Below are positions 20,618-60,100 of a stretch of DNA of 64,000 bases, in pieces. Both the position numbers and the translations under genes were made by a program. The stretch lies in contig JBLDXI010000017.1 in the NCBI GenBank assembly GCA_047495785.1, positions 744,001 through 808,000 of the forward strand. Direction: 5' to 3'. Positions within the stretch are counted from its first letter, which is position 1. Every line of letters begins with the position of its first letter. The DNA is from Lepidodermella squamata. Taxonomy: Eukaryota; Animalia; Gastrotricha. The notes beneath the pieces are model-generated. The model was given only the letters and a program-made list of their open reading frames with translations. It had not been told where the DNA came from and did no database searches.

Positions 20618-22225
20618 ATGGAAGCGTTATCGAGCTCTGAAACCGAAATTTCCGACCATTTTAACGCCAGTTTCAACAACGCCAGCTCGGCCCAGATTGA
20701 GTCTCATTTCAACCTAACGAATTCCCATGAAGAAAACGGCCATGAAACCAGCAGTTCTAGCCATGGTCATCATCAAGTTGGACATGCGAATAATCATTCA
20801 AGCGATAATTACTGCTCGTTATCGCATCATATAATATGCACGAATGGTAAAATTATACCGCTGTGGCAACCGAATCCTATCACCCAATCTGGGCCTGTTC
20901 GAGCTGGCCGGTCGATTGTGCTAATGCTGGGTATGACGTGGCTGTTTTTCGGCGTCTCCGTTATTTCGGATAAATTTGTCGAAGCTATCGAAGTTGTCGT
21001 GTCGCAGAAGAAAAAAGTCCGCGTTGTTTCGCGCGTTACCGGACTCGAGGAGTACCATTACATTCCGATTTGGAACGAAACTGTCGCGCATGTAAGCATT
21101 TAATACAGGATTATGAGACATGACCCAATTTGGGACATAAGCTGTTTCCCTTTCGCACACTATTTTAAATCTCTTTTTACTTTAATTTTGAATTTTTTCA
21201 TAATTTTCCGATGACCCAGTTTCGGACAAAACTTTTCCGGTTATTTTTTGAAGGTTTTAATTTCTGTGAATTTTTAATTTTTTTTCAATTTTTTTGTTGA
21301 CTGGAAAGGGGATTTTTTAGATTTTTTAATTAAATTTTAATTTCATTTAAAAAAAATATGTTACCGTTTTCTAGCTTGCTCTTGCCGTAGTTGGCTCTTG
21401 CTCACCTGAAATTCTGCTAACAACGGTCGAAGTTCTGGCTCATAATTTCGACCTGGGCGAATTAGGACCGGCAACTATTGTCGGATCCGGTGCTTATAAC
21501 CTGTTCATAATTACCGCAATTTGTATCCTGTCGGTCAAAAAAGGCGAATCACGCAAAATCGAAGATATGCACGTATTTTTCGTCACAGGCAAGCCGTCGC
21601 GATTAATTCAAAATCTTAAATTTCAAATTTTTTTATAAAGGTGCTTGGGCAATATTTGCCTATATATGGCTGTATCTTATGATCTCTGTCATTTCTGTCG
21701 GCATTGTCGAAGTTTGGGAAGCACTTCTCACCCTGGCTTTCTTCCCACTGACCATTATTACTAGTTACCTGGCTAATAAACGCTGTTTTGGCTTGCGCGA
21801 GAAACTGAGACGAACAAATCAATCAGTTCACCCGGTTAACGAAACCCCAGATGGCAATAATGGGGAAAATTGTGATAATTCGGCCGAGACTCAAAATGGC
21901 AATTTAGCGAATGGAAACGGGGTGACTGGTGATCATCAAAATCATGACAACGGCAGCTTGGCGCATCAAGCTAACGGGAAAGCTAATCCGGCGACGGCGT
22001 CTGCTATACACATTGCGACCCATTTGAGATTTTTGACGAACAAATCAGCGCGAAATAGAGCGAATAGCAGAAAAATGGCGAATCGCCTGGAGCTTCAGAA
22101 ACAAAATGGTGACGCGCCAACTGAACAAACAGGTAAATTGATTGCTTTAATCCATATTTTGGTATTAAAAATAAAATAAAATAAAAAATAAAAAAAAATA
22201 AAAAGTGTCGCTCCTGGGTGGGCTC

Positions 22226-22265
<40 letters not shown>

Positions 22266-24739: not shown

Positions 24740-25259
24740 AATATCTTTTTAGGACTTTCAGGCCAGTGAAATCCGGTTTAAGACTGCTATTAATAAACCA
24801 CGAAATGGTTTGATTTAAATTAAGAGTTTGAATACCGTACGGGATTGTATTGATCCGCTGGGCTGCAAAAAGCTGATACGCTATTGACCTTCAACGAGTA
24901 CAAAGAGATACTGTTAGCCTTTTTGTGGCCAAATGCATAGATAATACGTTTAGAGATTACATTTTTATGACCTTTTTGTTTCGGTAATAATCAATGAACA
25001 TCTCCTATTTACGTCAAGACGCAGGATTTGTCGTGTTCGTTCCCACATTCATAATTAATAGGAAAGAAGGGAAGAACAAAGACATAGGCAACGATTAACG
25101 ATTGATGCATCGCTATGGAGCAGCAAAGGAAAACTTGTTTATGATCGATTTGATACAAGACACCGTCGACGTTTTGTTAGTCCTTTTCGCTGGTGAATCT
25201 TGTACAAAAGAGCATGTTTACTCAAATGATAAGTCCTACTTAAATCGTAATTTTGTAAA

Positions 25260-28200
25260 ATGGCTGAGGTTTCTACATCCGAGGAACCTTGGTCATCAAA
25301 TGATACAACAACTCCAGAGCATGGCCACGCTAGACTGATTCTGCTACCAAACTCAAGTCTTCCAGAAGAATTGGTTCAAGATAGCCACGGTTCCGGAATT
25401 TCAGGTAGTGGCAGCCATGACGCCGGACTTGACCACCATGACAGCAATGAAGACCACGGAATCTCTCACAACTTGGAAAACCATACCTCAATTCACTCGT
25501 CTGAGGAACACAGTAGCCATGGTAATAATTCATGCCACGCCTCTGTCCACTGCATACCGGGTACATTGTTACCCCTATGGAACCCTGCGCCTATAAAAGC
25601 TCGACTCGAAGATCGCGTCGCTTGGGCCATCTTCTACATCATATTAATGGTCTACATCTTCATCGGAATGTCCATTGTTTCAGACATCTTTGTCTGCGCA
25701 TTGGAGAAGATCATTTCCCAAAAGCGTCGTGTCAAAGTTTCTGAGTCGAAATCGGGCCAAGTTGTCTACGCAAATGTCCACATTTGGAACCATGTCGTAG
25801 CGCATTTGACTCTCCTTGTTTTAGGCTCCTGCGCGCCTGAAATTTTGCTATCTGTCATTGAAACCATCGCCCATTCGTTCACAGCGGGCGAATTGGGCCC
25901 TGGAACTATTGTTGGAGCGGGGGCCTATAACTTGTTCATAATACAAGCGATATGCATAGCCTCTGTTAGAAATGGGAAGTCTAAGAAGATCCGCGATTTG
26001 CGAATCTATTTCGTAACAGCAGCCTTCGCAATTTTCGCCTATATTTGGCTTTATATCATTTTGGTACCTTCGAGTCGGGGCGTTGTCGAAGTTTGGGAGG
26101 CTGTCCTTACCTTCCTAATGTACCCGCTATTGGTCTTCACAGCTTATGCCATCGACAAACATTTTTTCGGAATTTTTTCGAAAAAGAGGCGATCCTCCGC
26201 GGTAGTTCCCATCATTACGGTCGAGGAGGCCACAAGCAGTAGTGAAAGCTCGACCCCGCTACCAAACAACGCTGCTTCATCCAGCGCTGAACCTCCAGCT
26301 GAGCGAAGTAACGATGTTTTCAGTAAGATTGAGAAACGTTACCTCGAGATTACTGATGAGGTTCGAGCGAAGAATCCTAACTTGCCCACGGCAGAGATAA
26401 CACAAATTGCTGCGGTTCAGTTGCTGAAGGAGCTGCCTAAAGGTCACGGCTACTACAGAATGCAGACAGGTCGTGGCGTGGCTGGTGGTGGGGAAATTAT
26501 CAATATGAAAAGATTGCAAGAAATGCTCGCGGCGCAAGAAGAAGAGCGAAATCGAACGTTAGACCGAAATATGCAAGTCATCAGTTTCGATCCTGACCAA
26601 TACAAAGTGATGGAAAATGTTGGGGTCTTCTACGTTAATGTCTCGAGGCAAGGACGAGATCTTGACAATATTGTATTGGTTGATTATCGAACAAAAGATG
26701 GTAAAAAATCCATTCCATTTGGCTTCAATAATTAGGTACTTTTTCAGGCTCTGGAAAAGCTGGGATTGATTACGACAGCGTTCAAGGAACATTAGTTTTC
26801 AACAAAGGCGAAAAGCTGAAGCAAATACCTATTCACATCATTGACGACGATGAATTTACGAACGACTGCGATTTTCATGTAACCCTATCAAACCCGAAAC
26901 TAATTACAATTGGTCTTGCCGGCAGGGTCAGTTATCTTTAGGGTGTCATACACCTTATATATATATATATATAACCATATTCACAGGACACCAAAGTTTC
27001 ATTGGGCGAAAAAAGCACAGCAACAGTTTTTAAGATGGACGACGACCAAGGCGGACTGTTCCATTTTATGAAAGATTCTGAGAAAATTGACGAAAATGTC
27101 GGGGAAGCTTCATTAACTATTGTTCGATCTTCTGGAGTGAAAGGCCGAGTGGACGTTCCTTATAGGATAATTCCTATCACTGCGTTTCCTTACGTCCACT
27201 ACGAGGAAACTAGTACTTCAAATGTAGTTACGTTTGAAGTCCGTCAAACTGAGTAAGTTTCCTATATTCACGTATCCGTTGTTTAATCTAATTTACTTAG
27301 ACAACATGTCAAGGTCAAGATAACGAACGAAGGGAAGCTGAAAAAGGAGAAGACCTTCAAAATCGAACTAGGTGAACCGATTTGGAGTGCTAATCAACGT
27401 CAGCCCACTTTGATCAACAAAAAGCCCAAATCAAACTCTCGAAGGATGTCAGCTATGAAGTACGAACTCAACGACTTACTGAACGAGTCGCTAAATGGAG
27501 ATGGCGTAGTGGAAACATCGAAATTGGGTCGGCCTAGATTGGGCGAACCCAGTTCAATGACCGTTACGATACGAGAAAGTGAAGAGCTGCGAGCCACGCT
27601 GGAAGAGATCGTAGAAATCAGCGAGAACGTCGGCGGTCTTGTGGGAACAACTTCGTGGTCGGATCAATTTCGAAATGCAATGAAACTATACGGAGATATC
27701 GATCCAGATAGCGGGGAGATGAAAGAACCAAATTGGCGCAACTTTGTTATCCACTTCATTACAATCTTTTGGAAGGTCCTCTTTGCTTCGATACCCCCTG
27801 TTTCAATAGGGTTTGGCTGGTTATCGGCCTTTATGGCCTTGCTATTCATAGCCCTCATGACAGCGATTATTGGCGATCTTGCGTCGCATTTAGGCTGTAC
27901 AATTGGTATGCCGGATGAATTGACGGCAATAACTTTCGTCGCGTTGGGTACCAGCTTACCAGACATGTTCGCCTCTCGTTTAGCTGCGATTCGTGAAGAA
28001 TCCGCAGATGCAGCGATTGGGCACGTTAATGGAGCTGTGGCTGTCAATGTTTTTCTGGGCCTTGGCCTGCCCTGGTCTATAGCTGCGATATATCAGAACA
28101 GCATAGGGAAGCAGCTACATGTCCCACCCGGGAGTTTGACGTTTAGCTTCACTACTTTTTTGTCATTCGGCGCTGCCGGCATCTGTGTTGTGCTATTACG

Positions 28201-28339
28201 GCGTCTGAAGCCGGTTCACGGTGAACTCGGCGGCCCTGTAGTTATCCGAACGTTAACCGTAGTGTTTTTTGGTCTTCTATGGCTTGTTTACGTTATTTTA
28301 TCTGCTTTGGATAATTATTGTATAATCGTGACATTTTGA
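25260..28339 (+). CDS. NCX/SLC8-like exchanger copy 3
   Basis: VAHLTLLVLGSCAPE; GPGTIVGAGAYN; two Calx-beta domains; GTSLPD..GHVNGAVAVNV; GELGGP. Confidence 0.93.
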
Positions 28340-28517
28340 CGTGAGAAATTATAATGAATAAAACTGAGCAGATCGAACCTGTGATTTCCGGAAATGTTCT
28401 TTTTCTCAAGACTTCCGGCTGAGCTACGTTCCTTGGCGACATGGAATAACAAACGGAAAACAAATCTTTCTCAGCTATGAACTCGTGCTAATTCTGAAAA
28501 TAAGTCTATATGTTAGA

Positions 28518-31145
28518 ATGAGTAGCCACGAGCTTTCTGCTCAGCTGTTAAATGACGCCGATTTTCTGAATGGATCCGAGACCAATGATTCAAATCATAC
28601 GATACTGCATCAATCTCACTGTGCAAGGGAGCGATGCGTCGAGGGTCTCATAATTCCGATATGGCTACCGGACAATCAACACATCCCAACTGCGGAGAGA
28701 GCAGGACGAATCGTCGTCTATATTCTAGTGCTCGCCTACCTTTTCGTTGGCATGTCCATTGTCGCGGATCATTTTGTCGAAGCCATTGAAGTTATAACAT
28801 CAAAAAAGCGAAAGGTTAAGGTGGTGTCGACCAATGGTGACGTTAAAACAATTCATGTCCCGGTTTGGAACGAACAAGTCGCACATTTCACGCTGTTTGT
28901 TCTCAGCGGCTGTGCCCCTGAAATTATATTATCAGTGGTCGAAACTGTGAAAAACGACTTCGAAACGGAAGAATTAGGTCCTGGTACTATCATCGGATCC
29001 GGCTGCTACAACTTGTTCATCATCACAGGTATCTGCATTGCATCCGTAGGAAAACCAAAAAGAATCGAGGAGTTGCATGTATTCTTCATGACTTGTAAGA
29101 TTTTCATACTCAATCCTCAATAGCTCACTTCAAATGTTAATCTGTTTCAGCTACTTGGATGATTTTCGCCTATCTTTGGCTTTATTTCATCGTCGTAATC
29201 AACTCACACTCAATAATCGAGGTTTGGGAAGCTGTTGTCACACTGGCGTTCTACCCGTTGCTCGTGATATCGGCTTACCTCGTCGACAAGTACGCTCGTA
29301 ACCTTCGAAATTGCTTCAAGCGAGAGAATTCGGTATTACCTCACGTTTCACTAGCAGAACAGTCGCGTGAGGCATTGAATTGGCGCGAAAAACGATTCGC
29401 TGTTCTAATGAAGGAGCTGAGAGGAAAGAACCCTAGCTTGGCCCCTGCTGAAATTCAAGAACTAGCCGAATTGGAGATGTTGAAAGAAATGCCGAAAGGG
29501 CGTAACTACTATCGCATGCAAGCCGCGCGTCAACTCGCCGGCGGGGGAGATTTGATCAATCGCGAAAAGTTACGCGAGAAATTCATCCGTTCTGAGGGTG
29601 CATTTTCCGACCCCGAGTATCAAATGATTACTTTCGAACCGAAAACATATGTGGCTATGGAGGACAGTGGCCAATGCAAACTCACCCTAATTCGAAGAGG
29701 TTTCATCGCAAATTCAGTGAGCATTGACTATTCCACCAAGGACGGGAGTGGGAGAGCGGGGACCGACTACGTTCAGACCGACAAGTCGCTAACGTTCTTG
29801 CCACATGAGAGTCAGAAGACAATCTATATCCAGATTGTTGATGATGATGAGTTCAAAGAAAGCACGCAGTTCTTCGTTACCATCTCAAACCCTGTATTTG
29901 TTAGTGGAAAGGGGAAAGCCCCTGTTCTTGAAGGAGATACTGCCACAATAACGAAGTTGGATGACGACCATGGGGGCAATTTCCATTTTACGACAGAGAA
30001 GCTCGAGGTGGAGGAAAACTGCGGCCAAATCTCCATTCGAGTTGCTAGATCTTCGGGGGCTAAAGGCAGTGTGATCTTACCTTTGAAACTATTGCCAATA
30101 TCAGCTGAGGCTGATATCCATTACGAAGATCCTAAGATAACAGAGTTACTCTTCGATAGCCGGCAGACCGAATACGATATCCCTTTTCGAATCATAGACG
30201 AATGCACTTTGGAGCAAAAATCGGTCGAGCTCGATATCGAGTTGGGCCAACCGAGATGGGCGCCGAAACAAGATGGGAATTTGACTGTCACGAAACTCGG
30301 CCAACCCAAGCTGAAACCTCCCTCGAAGTTGCGCCTCACAATCACAGAAAATAAGAGTCTTAAGCGTATTGTCAGTGAGATTGCTGAAACCGAAGTTGGA
30401 GATTTGGTCGGTTCAACTAGCTGGAAACAGAAGTTTGTCGATGCCGTCACTCTCCAGCAAGAGAAAGGTGAATCTAAAAGGAAAATATGCCTCAAATATT
30501 GCATGCACGGTTTGACTATTTTCTGGAAAATTGTCTGCGTCTTCATCCCTCCAACAGGTATTTTTTCATCTCCCAAAATTAAAGCAGTATTCTCAGATTT
30601 TTATAGCTTATCTCGATGGATGGCCTGCGTTCTTCGTCGCCCTTTGTCTCGTTGGGATACTGACAGCAATAATTGGTGATATCGCGAACGCATTAGGCTG
30701 TACGATAGGTTTAGCGGATGAGCTCACTGCTGTTACCTTTGTATCATTGGGGACCAGCTTACCAGATCTGTTCGCAAGTCGCATCGCTGCGTTGAAAGAG
30801 GACTCAGCCGACGCGGCAATAGGACATGTATCCGGTGCGAACGCGGTCAACGTATTTCTCGGCATTGGGCTAGCTTGGTCGATGGCTTCTATCAAGCAGC
30901 AAAGTGATGGACATGCTCTGCATATCAATGTCGGAAGTTTCCCGTACTGCATCATTCTGTTTTTCAGTTTTGCGACTTGTGCTGTTGTCGTACTTTTCCT
31001 TCGAAGATTGCCACCAATTCGCGGCGAACTTGGTGGGCCTAAAATTCTGAAGTATCTGACTCTAGGCTTCTTCGTATCATTATGGCTGGCTTATATTGTA
31101 TTGGTAGCCTTGGACACGTACTGTATTGCTAGGCCGAATTTATGA
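28518..31145 (+). CDS. NCX/SLC8-like exchanger copy 4
   Basis: VAHFTLFVLSGCAPE; IVDDDEF; KLDDDHGG; GTSLPD..GHVSGANAVNV. Confidence 0.93.
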
Positions 31146-31418
31146 GCAATTAAATTTTCTTTTGTATTTTGTGATATGATTCATTCGTACTGGCTTTTGG
31201 CATAATAATGTTGTCAACACAGTTTAGTTTGTAAAATTGATTTTACACAGGTCAGACTTACGCGGTGTTCGCAAAGCCCCTAGGGAAATGCATCCACGGA
31301 GACCGTTTATCGCTATTCGCGATTTTATTACAACGATGGAAAAATCGATTTTAAAACCTTGCTGCGATTTCAAAGCTGATAGCTGAAAGCTGTCTAAGGC
31401 TGGTTCGAGAAAGGCTCA

Positions 31419-34103
31419 ATGACAGTCTCTGATATCAGCAATCATCTCAAATTGAATTCAAGTAATTATAGCTTAGAAAATCGCACGAATTCGACGATTC
31501 GGTGCGCCACTGAAAAATGCACGGATGGCAAATTGATTCCACAATGGCTTCCTGATGTCCACTACGCCTCACCAGTGGACCGAACTGGTCGCATCATAGT
31601 CTATATCCTATCACTTTTCTATTTATTCGTCGGCATGTACGTTGCATCTGACCGTTTTGTGGCCGCTATTGAGGTGGTTACCTCACAAAAGCGGCGTGTC
31701 AAAGTCGTCTCGAAAAGTGGCCATGTCGAATACGTTCGAGTTAAAGTCTGGAATGAAACAGTCGCTCATTTAACGCTATTCGTTCTGGGCAGTTGTGCCC
31801 CTGAAATTTTTCTCTCCGTTGTTGAAATTGTCACTAATGACTTTCAAACCGAGGAATTAGGTTTGAAAAATGTCTTTTTCTGGGCATATTGAGGTCATTG
31901 TCCCTCTTTATAACAGGTCCTGGAACGATTGTTGGTTCAGGATGCTACAATCTATTCGTGATAACAGGAATATGCATTGCATCTGTCGGCAAGCCTGCGA
32001 AGAAAATTGGCGAATTGCCGGTGTTTTTCACTACTGGTAAGGATTGAATAGCTTTTCTGTTATCATTCAATTTTACCTATGTTAACAGCTGCTTGGAGCT
32101 TATTCGCTTACCTATGGTTGTACTACATTATCGTTCTCAATTCTTATGCCGTTATTGAAGTTTGGGAGGCTTTGTTGACCCTAATCTACTACCCCGCCAT
32201 GGTAATATCAGCTTACCTTGTCGAGAAGTACGCTCCTTTAGTAAAGGCATGCCTGAAAAAAGGCAGCGCAGTTCAACCTCACAGCGAAGCTCAACAAGCC
32301 ATCGAAGCGATAGACTGGCGAGAGCGGCGCATTGCCGTCATAATGAAGGACTTGAGAGCAAAATACCCGGACAAGTCATCGACAGACATTCAAGAAATGG
32401 CCGAGCTCGAACTGTTGAAGGAGATACCTAAAGACCGAAACTTCTACCGAGTGCAGGCTGCTAGGCAAATGGCTGGTGGAGGTGATATTATAAACCGAGA
32501 GAAGGTTCGCAGCGTATTTGCCCGAAATGAATCTCGAAATATCGAAGTGAAAGACTATGATTCTCATGTAATTTCTTTCGATCCCGTCTCGTACACTGTT
32601 ATGGAAGACTGCGGAAAATGCAAGCTAACGGTCGTCCGCCAGGGCCTAAACCTCGGCAACACAATTACCGTTGACTATTCGACAAAAGAATATACAGGGA
32701 AGCCTGGGGTCGATTACGTCCACATTGCGAAGAAGCTTACATTTCATCCCCACGAAAACAGCAAAAACATCTACGTCGAGATTATCGACGACGAATTTTA
32801 CAATGCTGATACTCAATTCTTTGTGGAGCTTAGTAATCCAGTTCTCATCAGTGGCAACGGCGTTGTGCCTAAATTACGTGATGAAACGGCAACAGTCACG
32901 AAGTTGGAAGATGATCAGGGTGGATTTTTCAGTTTTGAAACCAGCGAGACTACAGTGGAAGAAAATTGCGGCCAGGTCAGCATTAAAATTCTCAGAAGCA
33001 GCGGCGCTAAAGGAACTGTAATTCTGCCGTTCAAATTGGAACCAATCACCGCAAAACCAGACGTTGATTACGATGATCCGGGGCGGAACGAAATCGTATT
33101 CGATCACCATCAAACTGAGTATGAAATGCGAGTCGCAATCATTGATGAATGTAAGGTCGACGTGAAAAATGTCCAATTTGCTATGACTATCGGGAATCCT
33201 GTGTGGGCGACACCCGATCAACACGACGTAGCCAATGTTGACACTCAACATCTCGGTAAACCAGGACTTGGATCACCGTCAAGATGCGTGATAACCATAA
33301 CGCAAAACAAAGGGCTCGAGAAGATTTTGAACGACATAGCTGAAACTGATGTTGGTCAATTGATTGGGACAACTACTTGGACTGAGCAGTTTAAGGAGGC
33401 GATCACAATACCGCGCGATCCTTCGAATCAATCAAAGATGCGCTTGGTACTAGATTTTGCCTTTCACATTCTTACAGTTTTCTGGAAAATACTGTTCGCA
33501 GCCATACCACCAACAGGTAATTCTTGCAATGGCGATTTTGAATCTTATTGACAGTATTTCATAGGTTATTTAGGCGGCTGGGCTGCTTTTTTCACTTCGT
33601 TTGGTTTAATCGGCCTTATGACGGCCGTGATTGGTGATTTGGCTAACGCTATCGGCTGCACCCTCGGGCTTGCTGATGAACTAACTGCTGTTACATTTGT
33701 CTCCCTCGGAGCATCTCTCCCTGACTTATTCGCAAGCCGAATCGCAGCTATTCGCGAGGACTCGGCCGACTCAGCTATAGGCCACGTAAATGGGGCCAAC
33801 GCTGCAAATGTGTTTCTCGGAATCGGATTAGCCTGGTCAATTGCAGCAATCAAGCAAAGCAATGACGGCCATGATCTTCACATAAATGTCGGCAGTTTCC
33901 CGTATTGTGTCGTCCTATTTTTCAGTTTCGCCAGTTTTGCCTTGATGATTTTGTTGCTACGCCGGTTACCACCAGTTCGCGGAGAACTTGGCGGTCCATT
34001 GGTGATCAAATGTGCAACTGTCGGGGTGTTCTGGGCCCTCTACGCTTCTTACGTGGTGCTGGTTGCCCTAGATACTTACTGCATAGTAAGACCGAATTTA
34101 TAA
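31419..34103 (+). CDS. NCX/SLC8-like exchanger copy 5
   Basis: VAHLTLFVLGSCAPE; Calx-beta pair; GASLPD..GHVNGANAANV. Confidence 0.93.
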
Positions 34104-40672: not shown

Positions 40673-40825
40673 ATAGAGAATGTATGAGTAATATCTGCTT
40701 GTCTATAAATTCTACTAGATGTTTGTACGTTTACGCAGCTGTTAGCAGTTTAAGATGGTGGAGCAATAAATCAAAATGTTAAGAAAGTGCTAAACTAATA
40801 AAAGTTATATCATTCATTCGCAAAT

Positions 40826-46007: not shown

Positions 46008-49000
46008 ATGGGAGTTCAAGAACATCCAGTTGAAGACCATGGGGGTGGAGATCACGGTGATGATCACGGAGATGGCGGAAATTCGACAGGAGAATGCTCG
46101 CCCATCCTAAAAAAATGCACCCATCCCCATTTCCTTCCAGAATGGCAACCAAGTCCTCTGACGCTACCCATAGAAATGCGAGCGGCTCGAGCTGCTATTC
46201 TGTTCGTCAGCCTTTTCTACATCTTTGTCGGTCTTTCATTCATATCAGATAAGTTCAACTCAGCAATCGACGTCATCGTTTCGAGAAAACGAAAAGTCAA
46301 AGTCGTTTCTCGAGTGACTAATACAGAGCAATACGTGAACATCCCTATATGGAACGAATCAGTCGCGCATCTGACTCTGTTCGTTCTGGGCAATTCAGCT
46401 CCGGAAATTCTCCTCTCCGTTATCGAGACGATAATGGGCGGTTTCAAAATCGGCGAACTAGCTCCGATGGTCATTCTAGGCAGCCAATTCAACCTTTTTG
46501 TAACAGGAGGAATCTGCATTCTGGCCGCTTGTCCAAAAGCGAAGAAACAGCACGAACTGCGAAATTTCTTCGTCACGAGTGAGTCCCATTTTAGCCCAGT
46601 GTTCAAGAGTAATTATCGAATTTGTTGAATTCATCTTTCAGCCGGGTCAGGAATAATTGCATACGGCTGGCTGTATGCTGTTCTCAGCGTTATCACTCCT
46701 GGAATAGTCGAGCCCTGGGAGGCCATTCTTACACTATCGTTCTTTCCGGTAACAAGTAAGGCTGAAGTTTTTGATTTTTTTGAGAATTTTTATGATCTCT
46801 GTCTATTTCAAAGTTGTTGTCGCTTACATTGTGGATCGTGAGTTTTTCGGGGCTTTCAAACGGCTGAAGAGACGATATGGGAGCAGACGAGTCGCTGCTG
46901 TGAATAACGAGGTGACCGACCTTACTTCCCACTCTGGCGCGAGTAGATCAACCGATGACTCCGTTGCCATTGAGCTGGGTCGCGATATATCAGTTGTAGA
47001 GGATGACGATCTTACTGAGGTGGAGGCTGCAAGGATCGCCATGGAGAAGCGACAGACTCACTATTTGGCCCTGGTCAAAGAGCTCAGGGTTAAACATCCA
47101 AATTTAACATCAGCGAAAATCAACGAAATGGCTGAGCTGCAAATTATCGACGAAATGCCCAAGACTATGGGTTACTACCGCATGTTGGCATCGAAAGGAA
47201 TGTCTGGCAATGAAAGCATCATAAACATGGACAAACTTCACGCAGCTTTTGAGGTAATATGAGTATTTAAGTACCTGAAATTCAATATAACTCAACGATT
47301 TTCAGCCTTTGGTCCAAAAACGGGTCTTAAAACCCGGCCAGCAAGTTATTTCGTTTGACCCTTGTGAATATCGCGTCATGGAGGATTGTGGCACAATGGA
47401 ATGCAACGTCATTCGGGAAGCTCTGTCAGATAAAACTCTAAAATCAACTGTTCAAGTGAATTATGCAACAAAAGATGGTTTGTTTTCACTTGATAGCTGA
47501 AAGCTGATTTGAGCTCATTATTTACAGGAACCGGGGTATCCGGCAGTGATTACGTGGCAAAAAAGGGAACTTTGATATTCAAGCCCGGCGAGAAGCTGAA
47601 GAAGATTCCCATTAAAATCATTGACGATGACGAATTCAACTTGGATACCCAGTTCTACGTTGAACTATCCGCGCCAATGATCACAACCGGGAAGAGTCCA
47701 AAGCCGACATCATCGCCTGACGTCATAATCGACCCTGATCTCAAGAAGGCAACTATAACAAAAATTGACGACGACCATGCTGGTATTTTCTGCTTTGAGC
47801 ATCCTGAATTATCTTTCGAAGAAGATTGCGGCGAAGCTAAAATCAAAATCGTGAGGAATTCCGGGGCAAAGGGTGTAGTCACCCTACCCTACAAGATCAT
47901 ACCGGAAACGGCAATCCCAAAAGTCCACTTCACTGAGGTCGGCCTGCCTCAAGCAAACAACAAACAAACGACTCAAAGTCAAGTGATAAAATTTCAGGGT
48001 AAACAAACTGAGTAAGTACTTTTTTGCTTGAAATAATGGCGCCATAACCTCGTTGCTCTTTCAAGGCACATTCTGCGTTTCAAACTTGTCAACGAAGGTA
48101 GCTTCTCAAAGAAGGCAATATTCCGCATCGAACTAAGCCCACCAGTCGAGGGCAATGCTAACAATTGGTCCAGCTTGATGAAAACTGTCAGCAAGAATCC
48201 GAAACAGCCACCCACAAAGGAAACCTCCAAAGCAGAGAAAGCTCGACTGGGAGAAGTATCCAGTGTTCGCGTTACAATAACTGAAAATCAAAAACTGAAA
48301 TCTGTTGTCGATCGCATCTCAAGCTTGGACGTAAACGATTTCATCGGCTCATCATCATGGGGACAACAGTTTGTAGACGCTGTCACAGTTCGGCATGATG
48401 CCCATGTCGAAGAGGAGCAAGAAGAAGAGGAAGAACAGGGTGAGAGTTCAGCCCCCGCTAAGCCCAGCAAAGCTGAATACTGCAAGATGTATTTCTTCCA
48501 CATAATCACGTTTTTCTGGAAGATCCTTTTCGCATTCATCCCGCCAACTGGAATGGCCGGCGGATGGGTTACATTCTTCTCTTCTCTGATTTTGGTAGGC
48601 GGTATGATGGCTTTAGCCGCAGATATCGCTATCCAACTCGGCTGCACGATTGGTTTGAAAATCGAAATGACAGCTATTACATTAGTTGCGTTTGGTGTTA
48701 GCCTGCCTGATATATTCGCTAGTAGATTAGCTGCGGTTAAGGAGGAACATGCTGATGCTGCTCTTGGCCATATGATGGGCCGTATTGGTGTCAGCATTTA
48801 CGTAGGATTTGGTCTCAGTTGGACGCTGGCGTCTATCAAACAAGCACTGTCCGGGAACGTGCTGAAAATCCCGGTTAAAGAACTACCTTTCAATATTATT
48901 CTCTTTTTCATATTTGTGGGCGTAGCAGTTTTTGTTTTGCTGATTCGACGACTGCCACCGGTTCGTGGTGAACTCGGTGGGCCGAAACCTGCAGCAATAG

Positions 49001-49835: not shown

Positions 49836-52800
49836 ATGGGCGGCGGATCAGCTGCAACAGCTGGTAACGGCACTGTATCGTGTGCAACTATCACTTGCAG
49901 CCATTCAGAGTTTATACCGCAATGGATGCCTTACCCCAACCAAATCTCTGTCGGGGAACGAGTTGGAAGAGCCATCGTATATATCCTCATACTCGCTTAT
50001 CTTTTCATCGGAATGTCAATGGTATCAGACACATTCTGCGCAGCAATCGACCACATCATCACACGGAAGAGGAAGGTGAAAATCACATCTCGACTAACTG
50101 GATCTGTCCAATATGTGCAAATACCCATTTGGAACGAAACAGTGGCTCATCTAACCTTGTTTGTATTGGGCAATGTCGCTCCAGATATCCTACTCACCTT
50201 AATCGAGGTGATACTCAACGACTTTGATCCCGGACATCTTGGTCCTTCTGTGATTATCGGAACCGGTGCGCTTAATCTTTTCTTCATACAAACGGTATGC
50301 ATATGCGTGGTTGAAAAGAATCATGCGAAAAAAGTGGAACACATGCGATTGTACTTCCTAACTAGTAAGTCCCACTTAAATTTCATACTGTGTTTATGAC
50401 CTATTATTTTTTAGCCGGTTGGTTTTTGTTCGGCTATCTATGGCTATATTTTATTTTGGTCCCAATTTCAAATGGAATAATCGAGCCATGGGAATCCTTT
50501 CTGACCCTGTGCTATTTCCCGATGCTCGTCGTCTCTGCATATATTGTCGACCGCAATTTTTTCGGCTGCTGTGCTCGACTGAAGCGGCGAGCTATTAGGA
50601 CAATTTCCCCTTCTCTAAGTAAAGCTACAACAAACGTTTCTGTGATACCCATGCCTGCGCAATCAGTCTCGGATTCAACCACTGAGGTTACAACAGAAGG
50701 ACTGGAAACCCACATGGATCATGAGGATGAATTCGAAGCAGCCCGACAGGTCAGCTATCTTTTTTCTCCCTAGGAATGCTCTTTAAACGTTTTTAATCAA
50801 AATAGGCTTTAGAGAAAAGACAGCATCGCTTCTTGGCACTTCTCAAAGAGATGCGGGCGAAACACCCGAATAAAACTCAGCAGCAAATTCAGGAATTAGC
50901 CGAGCGCGAGCTTATTAAAGAGCTCCCGAAGAGCCCTGGCTATTATCGAATGTTGGCTTCAAAAGGCTTATCAGGTGGTGGTGATATTATCAACAAGGAA
51001 AAACTCAGAATGAAATTTGACGTAAGTCAATTTGGATGGGGGTCAAATTTGTGTCTAATTCCAGGATATCGATTTATAGATAAATAAGAAAAAAGACGTT
51101 CGACTGAGTGACCCAGCAGCTCAGGTCCTGACATGCGACCCTGCCGAATATATCGTGATGGAGGATTGTGGGTCATTCCAAGCAAATGTGACCAGGCTTG
51201 GTAACAACCTGGACAACGTAGTGTCAGTGGATTACGAAACCGAGGACGGCACTGGTGTTGCTGGGAGTGACTATGAAACCGTTAGAGGACGCCTGATATT
51301 CAAAAATGGGGAACACACCAAGCATGTGACAATCAAAATTATCGACGACGATGTATTCAATCTGGATACCGTTTTTTATTTGAAACTTTCCAATCCAGTC
51401 CTAGTTGATCCTGGACCTCACAAAAAACTCGTAATTTCGAGGTTCCGTGTTTCATTCCTAATATTCTTTTATATTACAGATCCCGAAACTATCACTCGAC
51501 CCTGAGGGCAGTAAAGCGAAGATAACAAAAGTTGACGACGACCATGGCGGAATTTTTCACTTCCAGAAGTCAAAAGTCACAATAGAAGAGGATGTTGGTG
51601 TAGCTGCGTTTCATGTTACTCGAAGTTCAGGAGCTAAGGGCTGCGTTGCTGTCCCATTCCATATAGAAGCCGCATCAGCCCAACCCGGTATTCACTTCAT
51701 TCCACCCTCGTCGAACCTAATAATATTCCAAAATCGAGAGACTGAGTAATTTCACCATATCCCTCTTAATCATTGTTAACATTATTCCCTTTCAGAAAAT
51801 TATTGAAGATGAAAGTTATCAATGAAGACCGTCTCGTGAAAAAGGTTCAGTTTGAAATAGAACTGGAGGAACCCTATTTCTATGAGGGCAAATTGGAGCA
51901 GAGCAATGGCTTCCCCCATAAAGCAAAGTTAACAAAACAACAATCAGAACAGTCTGCCGAAGAAAAAATCGAGACAAAAAACCTTGGAAAACCGAAACTT
52001 GGCGAGGACTCGAAAGTCGTTGTGACTATCACAGAGAACACTGGACTTCGAAATGCTGTCGATAACATAGCGAATATCGACCTGAACGATTTAGTGGGTG
52101 CTGTTTCTTGGAAGGCGCAGATTAAGGAGGCTATCGCTCTACCAACTCAGGCCCTTAACGATGAAGATGGAGATGGCGATGTCGACGAAGATGATGCAGT
52201 TGTTAGGAAAACACCATGGAAAGTCTATATATTCCACTATCTAACTCTCTTCTGGAAAATTCTCTTCGCCCTCATCCCTCCGACATGTAAGATTGATCTA
52301 TAAAATATCGCAATTCTCATTAAGAATTTTTGAAATTTTAGATATGCTTGGTGGCTGGTTCTCATTTTTCTGGGCCTTTGGTTACATTGGTGTAATCGTT
52401 GCAATAATTGCCGATATTTCCAAGCAATTGGGCTGTGTCCTTGGCTTGAAAGATGAAATTACAGCTATCACGCTTGTCTCATTTGGCACTAGCTTGCCTG
52501 ATCTTTTCGCAAGTATCCTCGCCGCGAAACGGGAGGAACACGCCGATTCAGCTATTGGTCACGTTAATGGGTCGTGTGGCGTCCTCGTCTTTCTCGGCAT
52601 CGGCATCAGCTGGACGGTGTGCTCGGTGAAAAAAGCCATCGATGGCAAAGAGCTGCGCGTTCAACTGCGTGGTTTTACGTTTTCCATCACAATTTTCCTT
52701 ATATTCGCGCTTCTTACAATCGCTGTGCTTCTGTTCCGCCGACGGCCAGCTGTCGGCGGTGAACTGGGCGGGCCGACGTTCTACCGCGTGTTAACCGGCG

Positions 52801-52880
52801 TTTTCTTCATGTTCTTATGGTTCACTTACGTCTTGTTGAGTGCGTTGTCAAGTTACTGCATAATCAATCCGCTATTTTAA
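49836..52880 (+). CDS. NCX/SLC8-like exchanger copy 10
   Basis: VAHLTLFVLGNVAPD; IIDDDVFNLD; GTSLPD..GHVNGSCGVLVF. Confidence 0.92.
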
Positions 52881-53533
52881 GTGTTTGAACGACACAGCTA
52901 CATAGTTTTGTATATTATGAGTCATTTTTACGCCTGAATATTATAATATAATTCACTTGTGAGTGACGCAACCAATAAATTTAAAACGAATCTATAAGGC
53001 TTCCTGCAACAGACTGAAACAGCCATTATGATGGGAAATCCAGGCGGATGATACCAGGAACCTCTAAGCTTTGTTGCCGAAATTCGTTAGATACGTTATT
53101 GATGATTCTTTGGCATTTCAATCGCACCCGTTTCCTCGACGGAAGTTATATAACATTCGGAAAGAGGCATAGGCCTTTTTACTTGAGTGACCACCACCTT
53201 GAGAACTAGCTAGACAGGATATGCTGTAAGCTGTAAGACGAACACTCTATAGGCTTAAATGAGTGGGATGAAAAGTCCCGAACATACAATTAATCGATCG
53301 AGTACTTGTTGTGAGCAATAAATCGAAGACAATCCTGGTTAAGTGAGACAACTTGCTCAATCCATCGATTTATAGCGGAGCAAGTTGTTGTGGTGCAGCC
53401 GATCGAAAAAGCTCGTTTTGCATCATGAATATTGAATGAAAAAAATCTCCCAGAAAGAAATTAAGCCCAGATATATCAGCATATAACTGTCATTTTCCCA
53501 ATAACTCGAGCGCCACTACTATATTCTTCAGCA

Positions 53534-56500
53534 ATGACCGGAGATTCTCATGGGTAATTTTTGACGAAATATAAATATCAAGTAACATAGTTGTCATCTT
53601 TAACGTCAGAGTCCACTCTTCAGAAACAGCTGAGCATGAAAGCTCCGGTGGCTGTGGCGCTGTCGGTTGCAGCCACACTGAATTCATACCGAATTGGAAC
53701 CCTTCGGCTTATCTCCTGTCGACCGAGGAACGCGTCGGCCGCGCAGTGGTCTACATCACAGTTCTTGCCTACTTATTTCTCGGAATGTCGTTAGTTTCTG
53801 ACAAATTCTGCGCTGCAATTGACCGAATTATCACGCAGAAGCGAAGAGTCAAGATCACATCGAGACTTACAGGAAGCGTGGAGTATGTTCAAATTCCTGT
53901 TTGGAATGAAGCTGTAGCTCATTTGAGCTTGTTCGTTCTGAGCAATGTTGCTCCAGATATTCTGTTATCACTCATTGAAGTTATTACTAATGATTTCAAT
54001 GCTGGAAAATTAGGACCTGAGATCGTCATCGGCTCTGGAGCTATCAACTTGTTCCTAATCCAAACGGTTTGCATTCTTGTCGTTGAGCCGAACAAAGCTA
54101 AACGAGTAGAACATCGAAGGCTCTACTTCCTAACAGGTGATTTGGTTGTAATGAATTCTCAATAGATTAGCATGTTTTTCCCACAGCTGGTTGGTTTCTC
54201 TTCGGATACCTATGGCTATACCTCATCCTGGGACAAATATCTCCTGGAGTGATAGAGCCTTGGGAATCTCTAGTCACCCTATCATATTTCCCACTGCTTG
54301 GTAAGTGGCTGTTTAGAGTGGACTATGTATTCCCTAATCTTTGAATTTTCCAAGTAATTACTGCTTACATCGTTGATCGAAATTTCTTCGGTCTCTGCAA
54401 ACGGCTTCAAGCTAGGTCCGGTGCAGTGAGCCCAGAATCTCACCGCAGTCAGTCAGAAATACAGACAGAAGACCTTGACCACGAGGACGAACTTGAGATC
54501 GCGCGGCGAACCCTTGAACAGCGCCAACTCCGCTTCATCGAGTTAATGAAGGATATGCGGAAAAATCATCCTAATAAAACTCAGCAGCAAATACAAGAGC
54601 TAGCTGAGCAAGAAGTCATCAATGAAATGCCGAAATCACCGGGTTATTATCGAATGCTTGCTTCGAAAGGATTATCAGGAGGTGGGGATGTTATAAACAA
54701 AGAAAAGCTCCGCATGAAATTTGAGGTAAGTAATAATCAGCCAATGCCATAACCACATTAATTTGATCGGCTTAAAAGATGAACAAGGTGAGCGACTCAC
54801 GTTTCAGCGACCCTTCAGTTCAAATAATCGCTTTCGACCCGGCTGAGTACATTGTTATGGAGGACTGTGGATCATTCAACGCTCACGTTACACGGCAAGG
54901 AAAAAATCTCGATAACGTTGTCGCGGTGGACTACTCAACCGAAGACGGTAAGAAAAACCGAATTGCTGAGTCGAAGTCACCAGGCCTTTACATCTCCGCT
55001 AGGTACTGGAATTGCGGGCAGTGATTACGAGGCAGCTAGCGGGCAGTTGTTTTTTGAAAAAGGAGAATCGTTGAAACATATCACGATCAAAATCATTGAC
55101 GACGATTTTTTCAACGTTGATACGGTCTTCTATTTAAAGCTGTCTAATCCTACTGTTGTTGACTCAGGTGTTAACAAGAAAATTGTGAGTTGCACTTTCC
55201 AGCTTTGCATTTATCTAACACTTACTTCAAAATCTAGACACCATGGGTTTCGCTAGACAAAGAAGCAATGAAAGCTAGAATTGTTAAAGTGGATGACGAT
55301 ACGGGTGGTATTTTCAAGTTCCCAAAGCCTACCATGGTAATTGAAGAACATGTCGGAACGGCTGTTTTAAAAATTTCCAGAAATTCTGGTGCCAAAGGGA
55401 CGGTAGCTGTTCCTTTCAAAATTATACCAGGTACGGCTCTGCCGGGCGAGCATTTTCTACCCCCACGCGAAACTGAAATCGTCTTCGAACACAGGCAGAC
55501 TGAGTAAGCCTTGCCATCACTATAAGCACATTAAAGTTGGCCTATTTACATTTAGGAATTCCATTCATGTCGGAATTATTAATGAAGATAAACTGGCCAA
55601 AAAAGTTGAATTCGCCATCGAGCTGGGAGAGCCTTACTTCTTAGAAACAGGCATTGTTCAGAAAGTTAAAGAAGGTGCGTTGCGTAATCGTCAAGCTAGA
55701 GGCGGAGATAAGGTTATTGACGTGAAAAACCTTGGCAAACCGAAACTGGGAGATGAGCCTAAGCTTATGGTTACCATCTCTGAAAACAGCAATCTTCGAC
55801 ACGCCGTAGATAACATTGCGAACATTGACATGAATGAACTAGTAGGGGCTGTTTCTTGGAAGGCGCAATTTATTGAGGCAGTCACACTTCCTAAAGCGAC
55901 AGTGAATACAGATGAGGACGACGATAGTTCGGCAAGCAAGCGGCCTCCAATCAAGGCCTACATCTTTCACTTTTTAACCCTTTTCTGGAAAGTTGCTTTT
56001 GCCTTCATCCCTCCGACACGTAAGTCCTGTCTAAACAAATTAACACTCTTCTTATCACATATTTATTTTAGACATTTTGAAAGGTTGGGCTTCTTTCCTC
56101 GTTGCCTTCATTTTCATCGGAGTTATAATTGCTATTATCGCCGATATTTCAAAGCAGCTTGGATGCTGCTTAGGCCTACGTGATGAAATCACTGCAATCA
56201 CTCTCGTCTCATTCGGAACCGGCTTGCCTGATTTATTCGCTAGCATTTTAGCCGCAAAGCGGGAAGAAACAGCCGACGAGGCTATAGGTCACGTCAATGG
56301 ATCCTGCGCAGTTTTGGTTTTTCTCGGTATCGGTTTGAGCTGGACAGTTTGTTCGTTCAAGCACGCCATCGACGGCAACGAGATGAGGATACAACTACGA
56401 GGCTTTTCGTTCTCAATAACGGTTTTCTTGACCTTCGCCGTTTTAGCTATAATAGTTCTACAGCTGCGACGGCTTGCGCCAGTTAACGGCGAATTGGGAG

Positions 56501-56610
56501 GATCCACACTGTTTCGCATAATTACGGCGATTTTCTTTGTATCGCTTTGGGTTATTTACGTCACTCTGAGTGCACTTTCAAACAATTGCACCATAAATCC
56601 ACCGTTTTAG
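53534..56610 (+). CDS. NCX/SLC8-like exchanger copy 11 (short first exon MTGDSHG)
   Basis: ATG 53534 splices in frame to VHSSETAEHES..CGAVGCSHTEFIPNW; VAHLSLFVLSNVAPD; GTGLPD..GHVNGSCAVLVF. Confidence 0.9.
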
Positions 56611-57195
56611 TTAATTTCCTTGTATTTACGGTTTCGAAGTCTGGTTCAGACTTGTTGAATAAAATCGTGTTTTTATTGCAAATTTTTGCTAAATGATTGA
56701 TAGTCCAGGGCCTTCGGATAAGGCGCATCTCACAGAAAGAAGATACCTCAATACCTTTTAATTGGGGGAAGGAATTCCTAATGTTTCGATTAGTCCTGGG
56801 TATGCTTGGTGACGCGAATCAATTGCCGCGCTGATATTGATTAACCCAGTAGAAAAACAATAACACTTTAACAAAAGACGACATTAATTACTTGTAATAT
56901 AGAAAATTGAAAAGCTTATTCATCAGAAATACCTCGCTAGATTTATTGGTCTTGAAAAGTATGAACTAACGTAGGCAGAACGTATTACGAAACATTGCAT
57001 TATTTATTGCAAACTCCATCACAGATTCAACTACGACGAAGAGTTTCGTAAATTTTTGCGTCAGAAAATCAATCCCAGGCAACGCATTTTGACCTCTCTG
57101 AAGAGTTTGAGCGAGTGGCGTAGTCCGTTCATTTTTTTATTTGAAGCAAGTACGTTTTTACTTCAACCTTTTGAAATTTTTTATCGGCATTGCCC

Positions 57196-60100
57196 ATGGC
57201 TGGCGATTACTATGAGGGGCTCAGAGAAGAAGTCCAGCCAACGAAAAGCCAACGGTATGAGAATGCCACATCGGAACCATCCGTTTACCCAGAATCTCGA
57301 GGTGACATTCACAGCCATACCGATAGTCACGATTTCAACGTTTCAAGCTACAATCACAGCTCAAAAACGAGTCACAGTGAACATGACCATTGCTCTGTTA
57401 CTGGCGATTGTGAAGCCGGTCTATTGATCCCAAGCTGGCAGCCTCCTCCTAATCAGATATCAGTAGAAGAGCGAGCTGGTCGAGCTATTCTTTACATAAT
57501 TTGCATGGCCTACCTTTTTCTAGGCGTCTCAATCGTCGCCGATAAATTTGTTACTGCTATCGAAGTTATCGTCTCGAAGACACGAAAAGTAGAGGTCGTC
57601 TCCAGGACGACTGGTCGGAAAACGTATGTTCGGATCCCTATCTGGAATGAAACTGTAGCACATCTGACGTTATTTGTCTTGGGTAACTGCGCTCCTGAAA
57701 TTCTGCTGACAGCTATCGAAGTAATAAATCGTGATTTCAAGGAAGGCGAACTTGGGCCAGGTTTTTCCCTAAGAGCGCATTTGAGAAAATTATTCATTTT
57801 TCAATTTACAGGAGCTATCATCGGATCTGGCGCTTACAACTTGCTAGTAATAACTGGAATATGCTGTCTATCTGTTCCACAAGGCCGAGTTTTGCGACTG
57901 CATGAACTGAGAATCTTCTTTGTAACCGGTAATAAGCCCGCAAAGCTCCAGCTAATCAATTAATTTTGTGAATTAAACATTTCTAGCTGCATGGATGATT
58001 TTCGCTTATCTATGGGTCTACATTATAACAATAGTTTCCACGAAGGGAGTCGTAGAAGTTTGGGAGGCAGTTACAACGCTGTTTTTCTTTCCGCTATGCG
58101 TTACATCCGCCTACGTAGCAGACAAGCGATGTTTTGGAATTTTCAAACGAAATCGAGTCGCTCCTGACGCTGAAACTGATGTTGAAAAGGCTCAAAGTGC
58201 CTTGGAAATTCGTGAACAGCGGTTTCTTTCTATTTTAGCCCAAGTGAAGAAGAAACATCCAAATCTGAGTATGGCAGAAAAGCGGGAGAGAGCAGAAATG
58301 GAGCTATTGAGAGAGGGCCCAAAGAATCTAAATTACTACAGAATGGAAGCCGGAAAACGAGTTGCTGGCGGCAGTGTAATCAATAGAGAAAAGCTTCGCG
58401 AAAAAATAGCGGTGAGTTAATATGATTGATCCTCCAAAGTCGGCCTTGAACTTCTCCTAGGCTGATGAAAATTCTCGAGACAAATTCAACGATCCATCCA
58501 TTCAAGAAATCGGATTCGATCCAACTGATTATTCTGTAATGGAGAATGCAGGAACGTTAATGCTTCACGTCGTCCGCCGAGGTGCTGATCTGAACAACTC
58601 CATCTCCGTAGACTTTAAAACCGTCGATGGGACAGGCAAAGCTGGCTTCGATTACTATCAGTCGGTGGGCACTCTAGTATTCAATAATAAAGAGTGTGGC
58701 AAATTGATTTCCATTAAAATCATTGACGATGACGAATTCAACATGGATACGCAATTCTACCTAGTTCTCGAAAATCCCAAACCGATAATTCCAAAAGGAG
58801 CATCACAGGCTGTAGCTGTAAGTTATGCATTCAAATTACAGGTTAATATTGTGTCTTGGATATAGGCCAAACTTAACGGATTGCAACTTCGAATCAAAGA
58901 TACAGGGACAGCAACGGTCAACAAACTAGATGATGATCAAGGTGGAATTTTTTCTTTCGATGCAGACGAAACTACCGTTGATGAAGGTTGTGGTTATGCA
59001 AACATTAGAATCACGAGAAGCGGTGGTGCAAAGGGAGACGTCTCCTTGCCTGTGAGTTTCTTGCCACTGACCGCCAAAAAGGGACTACATTACGACGATG
59101 CTGGAACTCAAAGCTTGCTATTTGTAAACGGCTGCGTTGAGTGAGTCTTCTAAAACTTGAAATTCAACCTTGGAGTTTTACATTGCTATAATCAGAAATA
59201 TTCTTCGGATCAAAATCATCGACGAAGGCTCGCTGAATTCAAAATCTGCGGTTCTCAACTTGCAGTTAGGCGAGCCCGAATGGGTAACCCCTGACAGCGA
59301 GCATGTTGGAGCCAAGCTGCGCAAAAGACGCTCCACGGCAGACATGGGAACTTCGAAACTGGGAAAGCCCCGTCTTGGGGATATCAAGTCTATTAAAATA
59401 ACAATAACTGAGGACCCTGAATTAGGAAGAGCAGTTGCTGATTTAGCAAACACCGAGCTGGGCAGTCTCGTCGGCTCTGCATCTTGGGCGGGGCAATTTC
59501 GAGAGGCGGTCACTCTACCAAAAATCGAAACCTGCGATGAAGTTGAGGAGATTGAAAATGGTAACAAATCCCGCTCTTCGTCAGGAGTGAAATGCCGCAA
59601 TGTTCTTCACTTCTTGACATTATTTTGGAAAATTGTATTTGCCTTCATACCACCACCCAGTATCGGCCAAGGCTGGCCCGCGTTTTTCGGTTGTTTAGCT
59701 GCAATTGGTCTGCTAATAGCTTTAGTTGGGGATTTCGCCAGCTATCTAGGCTGCACTGTTGGCTTGAAAGATGAACTAACCGCTATCACTTTTGTATCTC
59801 TTGGCGCTAGCTTGCCGGACACTTTCGCCTCTAGAATAGCTGCTATGAAGGAAGACACAGCCGATGCAGCCATCGGGCATGTAACTGGCGCTTGTGCTGT
59901 CAATATTTTTCTCGGAATTGGCATAGCCTGGAGCTTGGGTGCGTTCTATCAAACGGCTGTGAATGGCGCTGATGGCCTTACGATAGAACCTGGCACCCTA
60001 TCTTTCAGCTTGACGCTGTTTTTCTCCCTCGCCTCTGCTGCTGTTATCATTCTTCTACTCAGGAGGTTACCTCCTGTACGTGGCGAGCTAGGGGGAAAAC

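Follow-up and report, generated by a model that had tools for sequence, protein, structure and literature searches.

Introduction

The sodium-calcium exchangers (NCX) of animals are textbook examples of multipass proteins with a signal peptide. In NCX1, the segment that contains two cysteines and ILPxW (Cys..Cys..ILPxW) is the extracellular, N-glycosylated mature N-terminus (PMC2217150, PMC3679957). The signal sequence of NCX1 is dispensable for functional membrane integration, according to the account of Sahin-Toth 1995 that is given in PMC3667879. Here we describe 12 tandem NCX genes from the gastrotrich Lepidodermella squamata. The stretch that we analyzed (the window) has 64,000 nucleotides and is from GenBank assembly GCA_047495785.1, contig JBLDXI010000017.1, positions 744,001 to 808,000 of the forward strand; all positions below are counted from its first letter, and the copies are numbered in order. 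We propose that copies 3–12 are probably leaderless paralogues of NCX, with the first transmembrane helix (TM1) as an anchor that leaves the N-terminus outside (N-out) and with N-terminal tails that are glycosylated, disordered ectodomains.

Many proteins do without a signal sequence. Human multipass proteins without a signal sequence commonly have N-out signal anchors, with a bias towards negative charge on the outside; N-terminal tails of about 50 amino acids or less are inserted by EMC, and tails of intermediate length by either route (EMC or Sec61; PMC13220792, PMC6269167). Translocated tails of over 100 amino acids usually need a signal sequence (PMC13220792). Another described system that resembles the array is CTR1 (SLC31A1), which is leaderless and has an unstructured, N- and O-glycosylated extracellular N-terminus of 67 amino acids (PMC8867124). 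That N-terminus has clusters of histidine and an X-X-His site, and it is poorly conserved between species (PMC8867124).

Results

Twelve NCX genes in tandem

The 12 NCX (SLC8-type, CaCA superfamily) genes are all on the same strand, at about 13.7–60.2 kb of the window. We ran homology searches exon by exon, on separate exons or open reading frames (ORFs). Searches against Pfam found Na_Ca_ex, Na_Ca_ex_C, and two Calx-beta domains in the copies: PF01699 matches copy 3 in both its N-terminal ORF (E = 1.8e-13) and its C-terminal ORF (E = 1.8e-20), PF16494 is present, and PF03160 matches two stretches of copy 4 (E = 1e-33). With tblastn, all 12 copies showed the same two-repeat layout. The first exon of copy 8 matches structures of human NCX1 (8jp0 and 8sgi, E ~ 5e-39); residues 34–189 align to residues 53–207 of human NCX1, including the second cysteine and ILPIW. 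We take the genes of the array to be NCX/SLC8 Na+/Ca2+ exchanger paralogues that are specific to this lineage. Introns placed by homology are mostly 50–58 nt, with a few of 200–450 nt, and the distance from the stop codon of the previous gene to the ATG is about 180–750 nt, except before copy 8.

No credible leader in copies 3–12

To score leaders, we used the best mean Kyte-Doolittle hydropathy of any eight residues within the first 45 amino acids. By this measure, 64 of 69 complete animal NCX homologues score 2.4 or higher, while copies 3–12 score from -0.34 to 2.15. Seven of these copies (3, 5, 7, 8, 9, 10, and 12) have an in-frame stop codon 3–11 codons upstream of the ATG. A splice-aware scan of the intergenic gaps (ATG..GT/AG, with realistic splice sites) found no leader-like upstream exon for any of copies 3–12. 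For copies 4, 5, 7, 9, and 12, there was no leader exon in the gaps even by a fully permissive GT-AG scan, which did yield chance candidates for copies 3, 6, 8, 10, and 11. We rejected the candidate for copy 6, which adds merely the weakly hydrophobic LYICFSCS, and those for copies 10 and 11, which have poor donors and acceptors. The strong candidate for copy 8, at 40826, belongs to the gene for a Cys-loop receptor. The frame of copy 11 is open and lacks an ATG; a 20-nt first exon, followed by a 56-nt intron that ends with the acceptor CGTCAG at 53609, gives it a leaderless start.

For copy 3, the 5' end is also constrained by sequencing run X1, which we compared with positions 25000–31000 of the window (copies 3 and 4). 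We infer that X1 is RNA. It has GT..AG joints that skip 47 nt (26700–26746) and 48 nt (27253–27300), and its depth is zero in both of the intergenic bins that we examined, so it behaves as RNA. X1 covers copy 3 from 25247 to the end of the gene, and a contig at 25247–25340 includes both an in-frame stop (25248–25250) and the ATG at 25260. This shows that copy 3 is expressed and spliced, with a 5' limit at 25247. At 25000–25199, upstream of copy 3, the depth is zero, and we rejected the leader candidates from the permissive scan (ATG at 24994, 25105, or 25141) on this basis. Because no AG precedes 25247, a splice at this position is unsupported, if not strictly excluded, and spliced-leader (SL) trans-splicing is unsupported as well. 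Copy 4 is weakly covered by X1, with no cover at its 5' end.

Two other features of X1 should be mentioned. Many of its contigs have fold-back joints ("opposite strands") about 70–180 nt apart, which look like an artefact of the library or of the assembly. In addition, 35 letters that precede 29189 in one contig are loose and have no match in the window.

In copy 2, the 23 open codons before the ATG at 20618 encode a VLATLVLTM-type stretch. In the best model, which is predicted from the DNA, a candidate upstream exon (Table 1) is joined to this stretch via a 447-nt intron, with the acceptor at 20578/20579. The predicted product has a typical leader, with basic residues and then a hydrophobic core. 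Alternatively, the stretch may be what remains of a leader that has been lost. Copy 1 is similar to copy 2: the upstream frame is open and hydrophobic (13671–13772), and its sequence suggests that copy 1 likely has an upstream exon or a leader.

A preliminary description of this DNA, which was made from its letters and ORFs, saw no hydrophobic leader in these genes. That reading stands for copies 3–12, for which we also found no credible upstream exon with a signal peptide. It does not stand for copy 2, which has both the in-frame hydrophobic stretch and a plausible exon of this kind. We consider the absence of a cleavable signal peptide to be supported for copies 3–12 and doubtful for copy 2.

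Predicted topology of the tails

There are five TM helices between the tail and the cytosolic Calx-beta loop. In all of the sequences tested, the residues before TM1 have a net charge of 0 to -14, and the 25 amino acids after TM1 have a net charge of +2 to +6. The length before TM1 is 42–67 amino acids in seven copies, 93–95 amino acids in copies 2 and 12, and 119 amino acids in copy 3. That the tails are extracellular, as the preliminary description had proposed, is well supported by four features: the homology to the N-terminus of NCX1, the five TM helices, the charge bias around TM1, and a density of potential glycosylation sites beyond what composition gives.

Histidines and sequons

We defined the tail as running from the first in-frame ATG to the conserved Cys/PxW motif. 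The 12 tails vary from 25 to 102 amino acids (Table 1), and they cannot be aligned with each other apart from short motifs, such as the start M-[SAT]-S-H-E that is common to copies 4, 7, and 8. The motif that follows the tail (Cys-x4-10-Cys-x3-4-[ILF][IL]PxW) is present in every copy. In an alignment of 10 copies and two relatives, the two cysteines, the proline, and the tryptophan are invariant.

Histidine accounts for 65 of the 641 tail residues (10.1%), as compared to 2.2% of about 10,000 residues from the same ORFs (binomial p ~ 8e-24). The histidines form clusters (HxH, HH, or HG repeats) in the segment that is predicted to be extracellular. At least 9% of the residues are histidine in 10 of the 12 tails; there are no His tracts in copies 5 and 10. 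The Cys-pair region of the copies in the window holds 0–4 histidines.

The tails also contain 31 sequons (N-x-S/T), or 4.8 per 100 amino acids, as compared to 0.53 in the rest. When we shuffled the residues within each tail, we obtained 11.5 ± 2.8 sequons, and none of 5,000 shuffles reached 31. The sequons therefore exceed what would arise as a by-product of richness in Asn, Ser, and Thr. Six of the 31 have the form N-H-S/T.

These counts agree with the preliminary description, which had noted tails rich in histidine and in N-x-S/T sites ahead of a conserved motif with two cysteines and IPxW. All of the tail peptides that it quoted are found at the places it gave, and its range, 20618–57420, runs from the first ATG of copy 2 to the LIPSW motif in copy 12.

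There is a second, small cluster of histidines just after TM5, on the predicted cytosolic side, which is the opposite face of the membrane from the tails. It lies at about 35400–35440 in copy 6, 38800–38830 in copy 7, and 43690–43720 in copy 8, and its types are VHPHHS, VHAHHT, and IHPEMGHNHT.

Table 1. N-terminal tails and nearby features of the 12 NCX genes. Positions are in the window. Copy 1 lies outside the range of the preliminary description.
Feature	Position	Strand	Length (aa)	His	Sequons	Other
Copy 1 tail	13773..13985	+				From the first in-frame ATG
Copy 2 candidate upstream exon	20096..20131	+				ATG .. CAG/GTATGT
Copy 2 hydrophobic in-frame stretch	20579..20617	+				Directly 5' of ATG 20618
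Copy 2 tail	20618..20851	+	78	14.1%	4	
Copy 3 tail	25260..25565	+	102	13.7%	4	Net charge -15
Copy 4 tail	28518..28649	+	44	9.1%	3	Begins M-S-S-H-E
Copy 5 tail	31419..31532	+	38	1 His	4	
Copy 6 tail	34571..34705	+	45	11.1%	4	
Copy 7 tail	37799..37948	+	50	10%	3	Begins M-T-S-H-E
Copy 8 tail	42912..43031	+	40	10%	3	Begins M-A-S-H-E
Copy 9 tail	46008..46130	+	41	14.6%	1	12-nt repeat (x2.1) encoding DHGD
Copy 10 tail	49836..49910	+	25	1 His	1	
Copy 11 mini-exon 1	53534..53553	+				ATG + 17 nt, donor G/GTAATT
Copy 11 remaining tail	53610..53682	+	31 (joined)	12.9%	0	
Copy 12 tail	57196..57423	+	76	9.2%	3	Net charge -9

Relatives, paralogues, and polymorphism

The only close relatives that we found are on metagenome contigs (L001, L002, L036, and L037). 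The relative's contigs have exactly three tandem NCX genes, which we will call A, B, and C, between the gene for symplekin and genes for a sulfotransferase, DnaJ, and Fringe. A tree of the N-terminal membrane part places gene A with copy 2 (97/81), and it places genes B and C with copy 3 (100/98). Copies 2–12 and the relative's genes form a group (94/80, with the fork drawn unresolved); next to this group are the canonical NCX of animals and copy 1, which has a long branch. In L001, gene A has a hydrophobic leader of 14 residues, and genes B and C are leaderless. The lineage of copy 3 was therefore leaderless before the two species split. All three L001 genes keep sequons in the tail, and each tail has just one histidine. 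As judged from these orthologues of copies 2 and 3, the tracts appear not to be conserved between the two species.

We searched for relatives in two other ways. A scan of the Joint Genome Institute (JGI) metagenomes with an alignment pattern gave no further relatives. A word search with copy 12 gave no close orthologue: the best hit was 49% identical, in the membrane part only. Public assemblies contain another family of NCX first exons, which is leaderless, acidic, and sequon-bearing and has no histidine.

Within the 121-Mb assembly of L. squamata, there are at least 45 matches to NCX first exons. Those outside the array include a second large cluster on the contig that holds the window (C17:435000-572000), a gene at C19:3471828-3472328, and C101:6640-6924. 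Some of these paralogues (L018, L023, and L031) have clear leaders, and many others are leaderless and sequon-rich. In divergent paralogues at other loci (L012, L021, and L026), clusters of histidine are again found beside the Cys pair.

Run X2 has polymorphisms relative to the assembly in copy 3. The tail (codons 1–102) has five nonsynonymous differences, including His59Arg, along with two synonymous differences and a 3-nt deletion. The next 263 codons (103–365) have one nonsynonymous difference and nine synonymous ones. The tail of copy 3 is fast-evolving within the species.

The ion site of the alpha-1 repeat

In copies 2–8 and 12, the alpha-1 repeat has G-x-C-[AS]-[PS]-E where the canonical motif is G-S-S-A-P-E, so that the second serine is replaced by cysteine (at 21375–21590, at 25800–25830, and at the equivalent positions of the other copies). 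Copies 10 and 11 read G/S-N-V-A-P-D. The canonical ion ligands of alpha-1 are not retained in these copies, which bears on ion selectivity rather than on membership in the fold. Genes B and C of the relative also have the cysteine; because they share it, the change from serine to cysteine probably predates the split between the species and precedes the His-rich tails. The preliminary description had linked the tails to this change in the ion site. We did not find such a link: genes B and C have the cysteine without His-rich tails, and copies 9 and 11 have the reverse.

Discussion

A proposal for how the tails reach the outside

We propose that copies 3–12 have lost the cleavable signal peptide that is typical of animal NCX, and that TM1 serves instead as an N-out (type III or "reverse") signal anchor, as in most G-protein-coupled receptors (GPCRs) and in CTR1. 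The 42–119 residues before TM1 would be pushed into the lumen of the endoplasmic reticulum, probably by an Oxa1-type insertase such as EMC if the tail is about 50 amino acids; for longer tails, either EMC or Sec61 may be used. In the lumen, the tail would be N-glycosylated at several sites. It would end up as a disordered, acidic appendage on the outside of the cell, rich in Ser, Asn, and His, and the conserved hairpin with the Cys pair and ILPxW would keep it tethered next to the transporter's outer mouth. More tentatively, selection could have kept the high content of histidine as a charge switch near the ion entrance, dependent on pH or on divalent metals; we view this last step as possible rather than probable. 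Because the leader of NCX1 is dispensable, and because N-out anchors are common, the loss of a leader should be mechanistically easy.

Several observations weigh against this proposal. Leaders are probably present in copies 1 and 2. Our call of "no leader" is a hydropathy heuristic that was calibrated on homologues. Mini first exons do occur in the array, as in copy 11. The support from RNA for a leaderless 5' end is for copy 3 only and is from short contigs, and the X1 contig at the 5' end of copy 3 carries 29 unplaced letters at its own 5' end. At 119 amino acids before TM1, copy 3 exceeds the length that is usually translocated without a signal sequence. And as for the histidines, the relative's genes have just one each, and the tail of copy 3 is evolving quickly.

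Are the histidines due to drift?

The tail may merely need to be unfolded, poor in Lys and Arg, and glycosylated. The histidines would then be a by-product of the turnover of low-complexity sequence or of gene conversion among the tandem copies. This is a serious possibility, although we would not call it probable. It would fit with tails that cannot be aligned beyond short motifs, with the rapid evolution of the tail of copy 3, with the lack of His tracts in the relative, and with the leaderless, acidic, and sequon-bearing family in public assemblies that has no histidine at all. However, we rejected a microsatellite origin for the His tracts: the sole repeat is in copy 9 (2.1 copies of DHGD), so slippage cannot account for the tracts in general. 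And a fivefold excess of histidine across 10 paralogues, as well as at distant loci, is hard to obtain by drift alone.

Are the tails metal sensors?

The preliminary description suggested that the His tracts are dedicated sensors of Zn, Ni, or Cu, or of pH, that are coupled to the remodelling of the ion site; the proteins would then be metal-regulated or metal-carrying exchangers. We think that this is unlikely, even though the enrichment (histidine near 10% in 10 of the 12 tails) is concerted and lineage-wide in tails that otherwise cannot be aligned, which suggests selection. The clusters also adjoin the Cys pair, and they recur at L012, L021, and L026. Once the initial methionine is removed, copies 4, 7, and 8 would expose X-X-His, the ATCUN pattern that CTR1 uses (PMC8867124), but N-terminal acetylation would block this site. 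There is also a precedent among the plant relatives of NCX, as MHX is a Mg2+/H+ exchanger (PMC3679957). On the other hand, the orthologues in the relative have just one histidine each, even those (B and C) with the ion-site cysteine. Copies 5 and 10 do not have His tracts, and copies 9 and 11 have His tracts without the cysteine. A dedicated sensor would also be at odds with the His-to-Arg polymorphism and the high nonsynonymous load in the tail of copy 3. In the more general sense, metal or pH sensing by the tails is plausible, and it is weakened by the lack of conservation.

Are the gene models incomplete?

If unseen upstream exons provide most copies with cleavable signal peptides, then these are conventional NCX with longish mature N-termini. 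Copy 2 shows how this could come about, with its hydrophobic stretch and a good candidate exon, and copy 1 is similar; the orthologue of copy 2 (gene A of L001) does have a leader, and copy 11 needs a 20-nt first exon. For copies 3–12 as a whole, this explanation seems improbable. Stop codons lie just upstream of the ATG in seven copies, and the gaps are short and have no credible leader exon. The sole strong leader (at 40826) is that of the Cys-loop receptor gene. For copy 3, the RNA-like contig holds the upstream stop, and the preceding 250 nt are without transcription. Furthermore, the start M-x-S-H-E is conserved in copies 4, 7, and 8, and the relative has leaderless orthologues.

Finally, the leaderless tails, studded with His and Cys, could mark a lineage-specific branch of NCX in combination with the serine-to-cysteine change in the alpha-1 ion site; this branch would have turned into a transition-metal (Zn2+/Cu2+/Ni2+) exchanger or a metal-gated one. 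We consider this most improbable. The tail would then capture metal at the outer mouth, including by ATCUN-type X-X-His in copies 4, 7, and 8. The branch would be an animal equivalent of plant MHX, which also carries Zn2+, and would resemble the ectodomain of CTR1 in function.

Other genes in the window

The single long gap in the array, of 2.2 kb between NCX copies 7 and 8, exists because a small gene for a Cys-loop ligand-gated channel sits there (40826–42602, + strand). Two of its exons match Neur_chan_LBD, its C-terminal ORF resembles TM4, and it has its own clear signal peptide at 40826. At 57820–57900, the first ORF of copy 12 has an in-frame insert, flanked by GELGPG and AIIGSGAYN, which is not in the other copies; this is probably a short in-frame intron that the ORF finder read through. 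On the 5' side of the array there are three more ORFs, at 3586–4437 (- strand), 5185–6057 (- strand), and 8872–10439 (+ strand): one is GTPase-like, one is a fragment of a reverse transcriptase, and one is a Cys/Trp-rich, lectin-like protein with a leader.

Significance and comparison with known systems

Our proposal that copies 3–12 are leaderless, with TM1 as an N-out anchor, would make this tandem family a natural counterpart to the 1995 experiment with the leader of NCX1: it would have dropped the leader and would rely on TM1. The natural tails, with 42–119 amino acids before TM1, would be a set for testing the length limits of leaderless translocation. The expansion of NCX in this genome is unusually large and includes both leader-bearing and leaderless members. 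A lineage-wide enrichment of histidine beside the extracellular ion entrance has not been described for NCX, and our search of the literature found no paper that describes leaderless, His-rich tails on NCX. If the tails bind metals or titrate with pH, they would add a regulatory module of a new kind to a major Ca2+ transporter; if they have no such role, they would illustrate how the composition of glycosylated ectodomains can drift.

The closest systems are the animal exchangers NCX1–3 (SLC8), such as human NCX1 and squid NCX-SQ1. Like the array, they have two Na_Ca_ex repeats, Na_Ca_ex_C, two Calx-beta domains, the Cys..Cys..ILPxW segment, and a basic cluster after TM1. But NCX1 and 64 of the 69 animal homologues have a cleaved hydrophobic leader, and the mature tail is about 15–35 amino acids, with one sequon, and is not His-rich. 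In contrast, copies 3–12 are leaderless, with tails of 25–102 amino acids, up to four sequons, and 9–15% histidine (one histidine in copies 5 and 10). Another difference is the cysteine in place of the alpha-1 serine in copies 2–8 and 12.

As for the route to the membrane, N-out multipass proteins such as most GPCRs also lack a signal sequence and have an N-terminal tail that is poor in Lys and Arg, along with a charge bias around TM1 (PMC13220792, PMC6269167). Their tails are short and glycosylated; in the array, the glycosylation is predicted and the length varies. They differ from the array in fold and in function, and the 93–119 amino acids before TM1 in copies 2, 3, and 12 reach or exceed what is usual for translocation without a leader. 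CTR1 shares the leaderless state, the clusters of histidine, and the N-terminal X-X-His (predicted for copies 4, 7, and 8) with the array. However, its fold is unrelated, it has clusters of methionine, and its binding of metal has been demonstrated, while the array is known from sequence and is not enriched in methionine. The ZIP/LIV-1 zinc transporters also have His-rich segments, either extracellular or in loops, and there they are tied to metal handling (PMC4915132, PMC7949119); but the family is unrelated, and the large ectodomains of LIV-1 are folded domains.

Other NCX-type proteins work without a signal peptide, including plant MHX, Chlamydomonas CrNCX, and archaeal NCX_Mj (PMC3679957, PMC3667879). 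Unlike the array, these have short N-termini that are not enriched in histidine or sequons, and they are not of the animal plasma-membrane type with the Cys-pair motif. In comparison to all of these systems, the array varies a well-known family of transporters in a way that is real, if modest, with mostly leaderless, His-rich tails that are predicted to be N-out and glycosylated at multiple sites.

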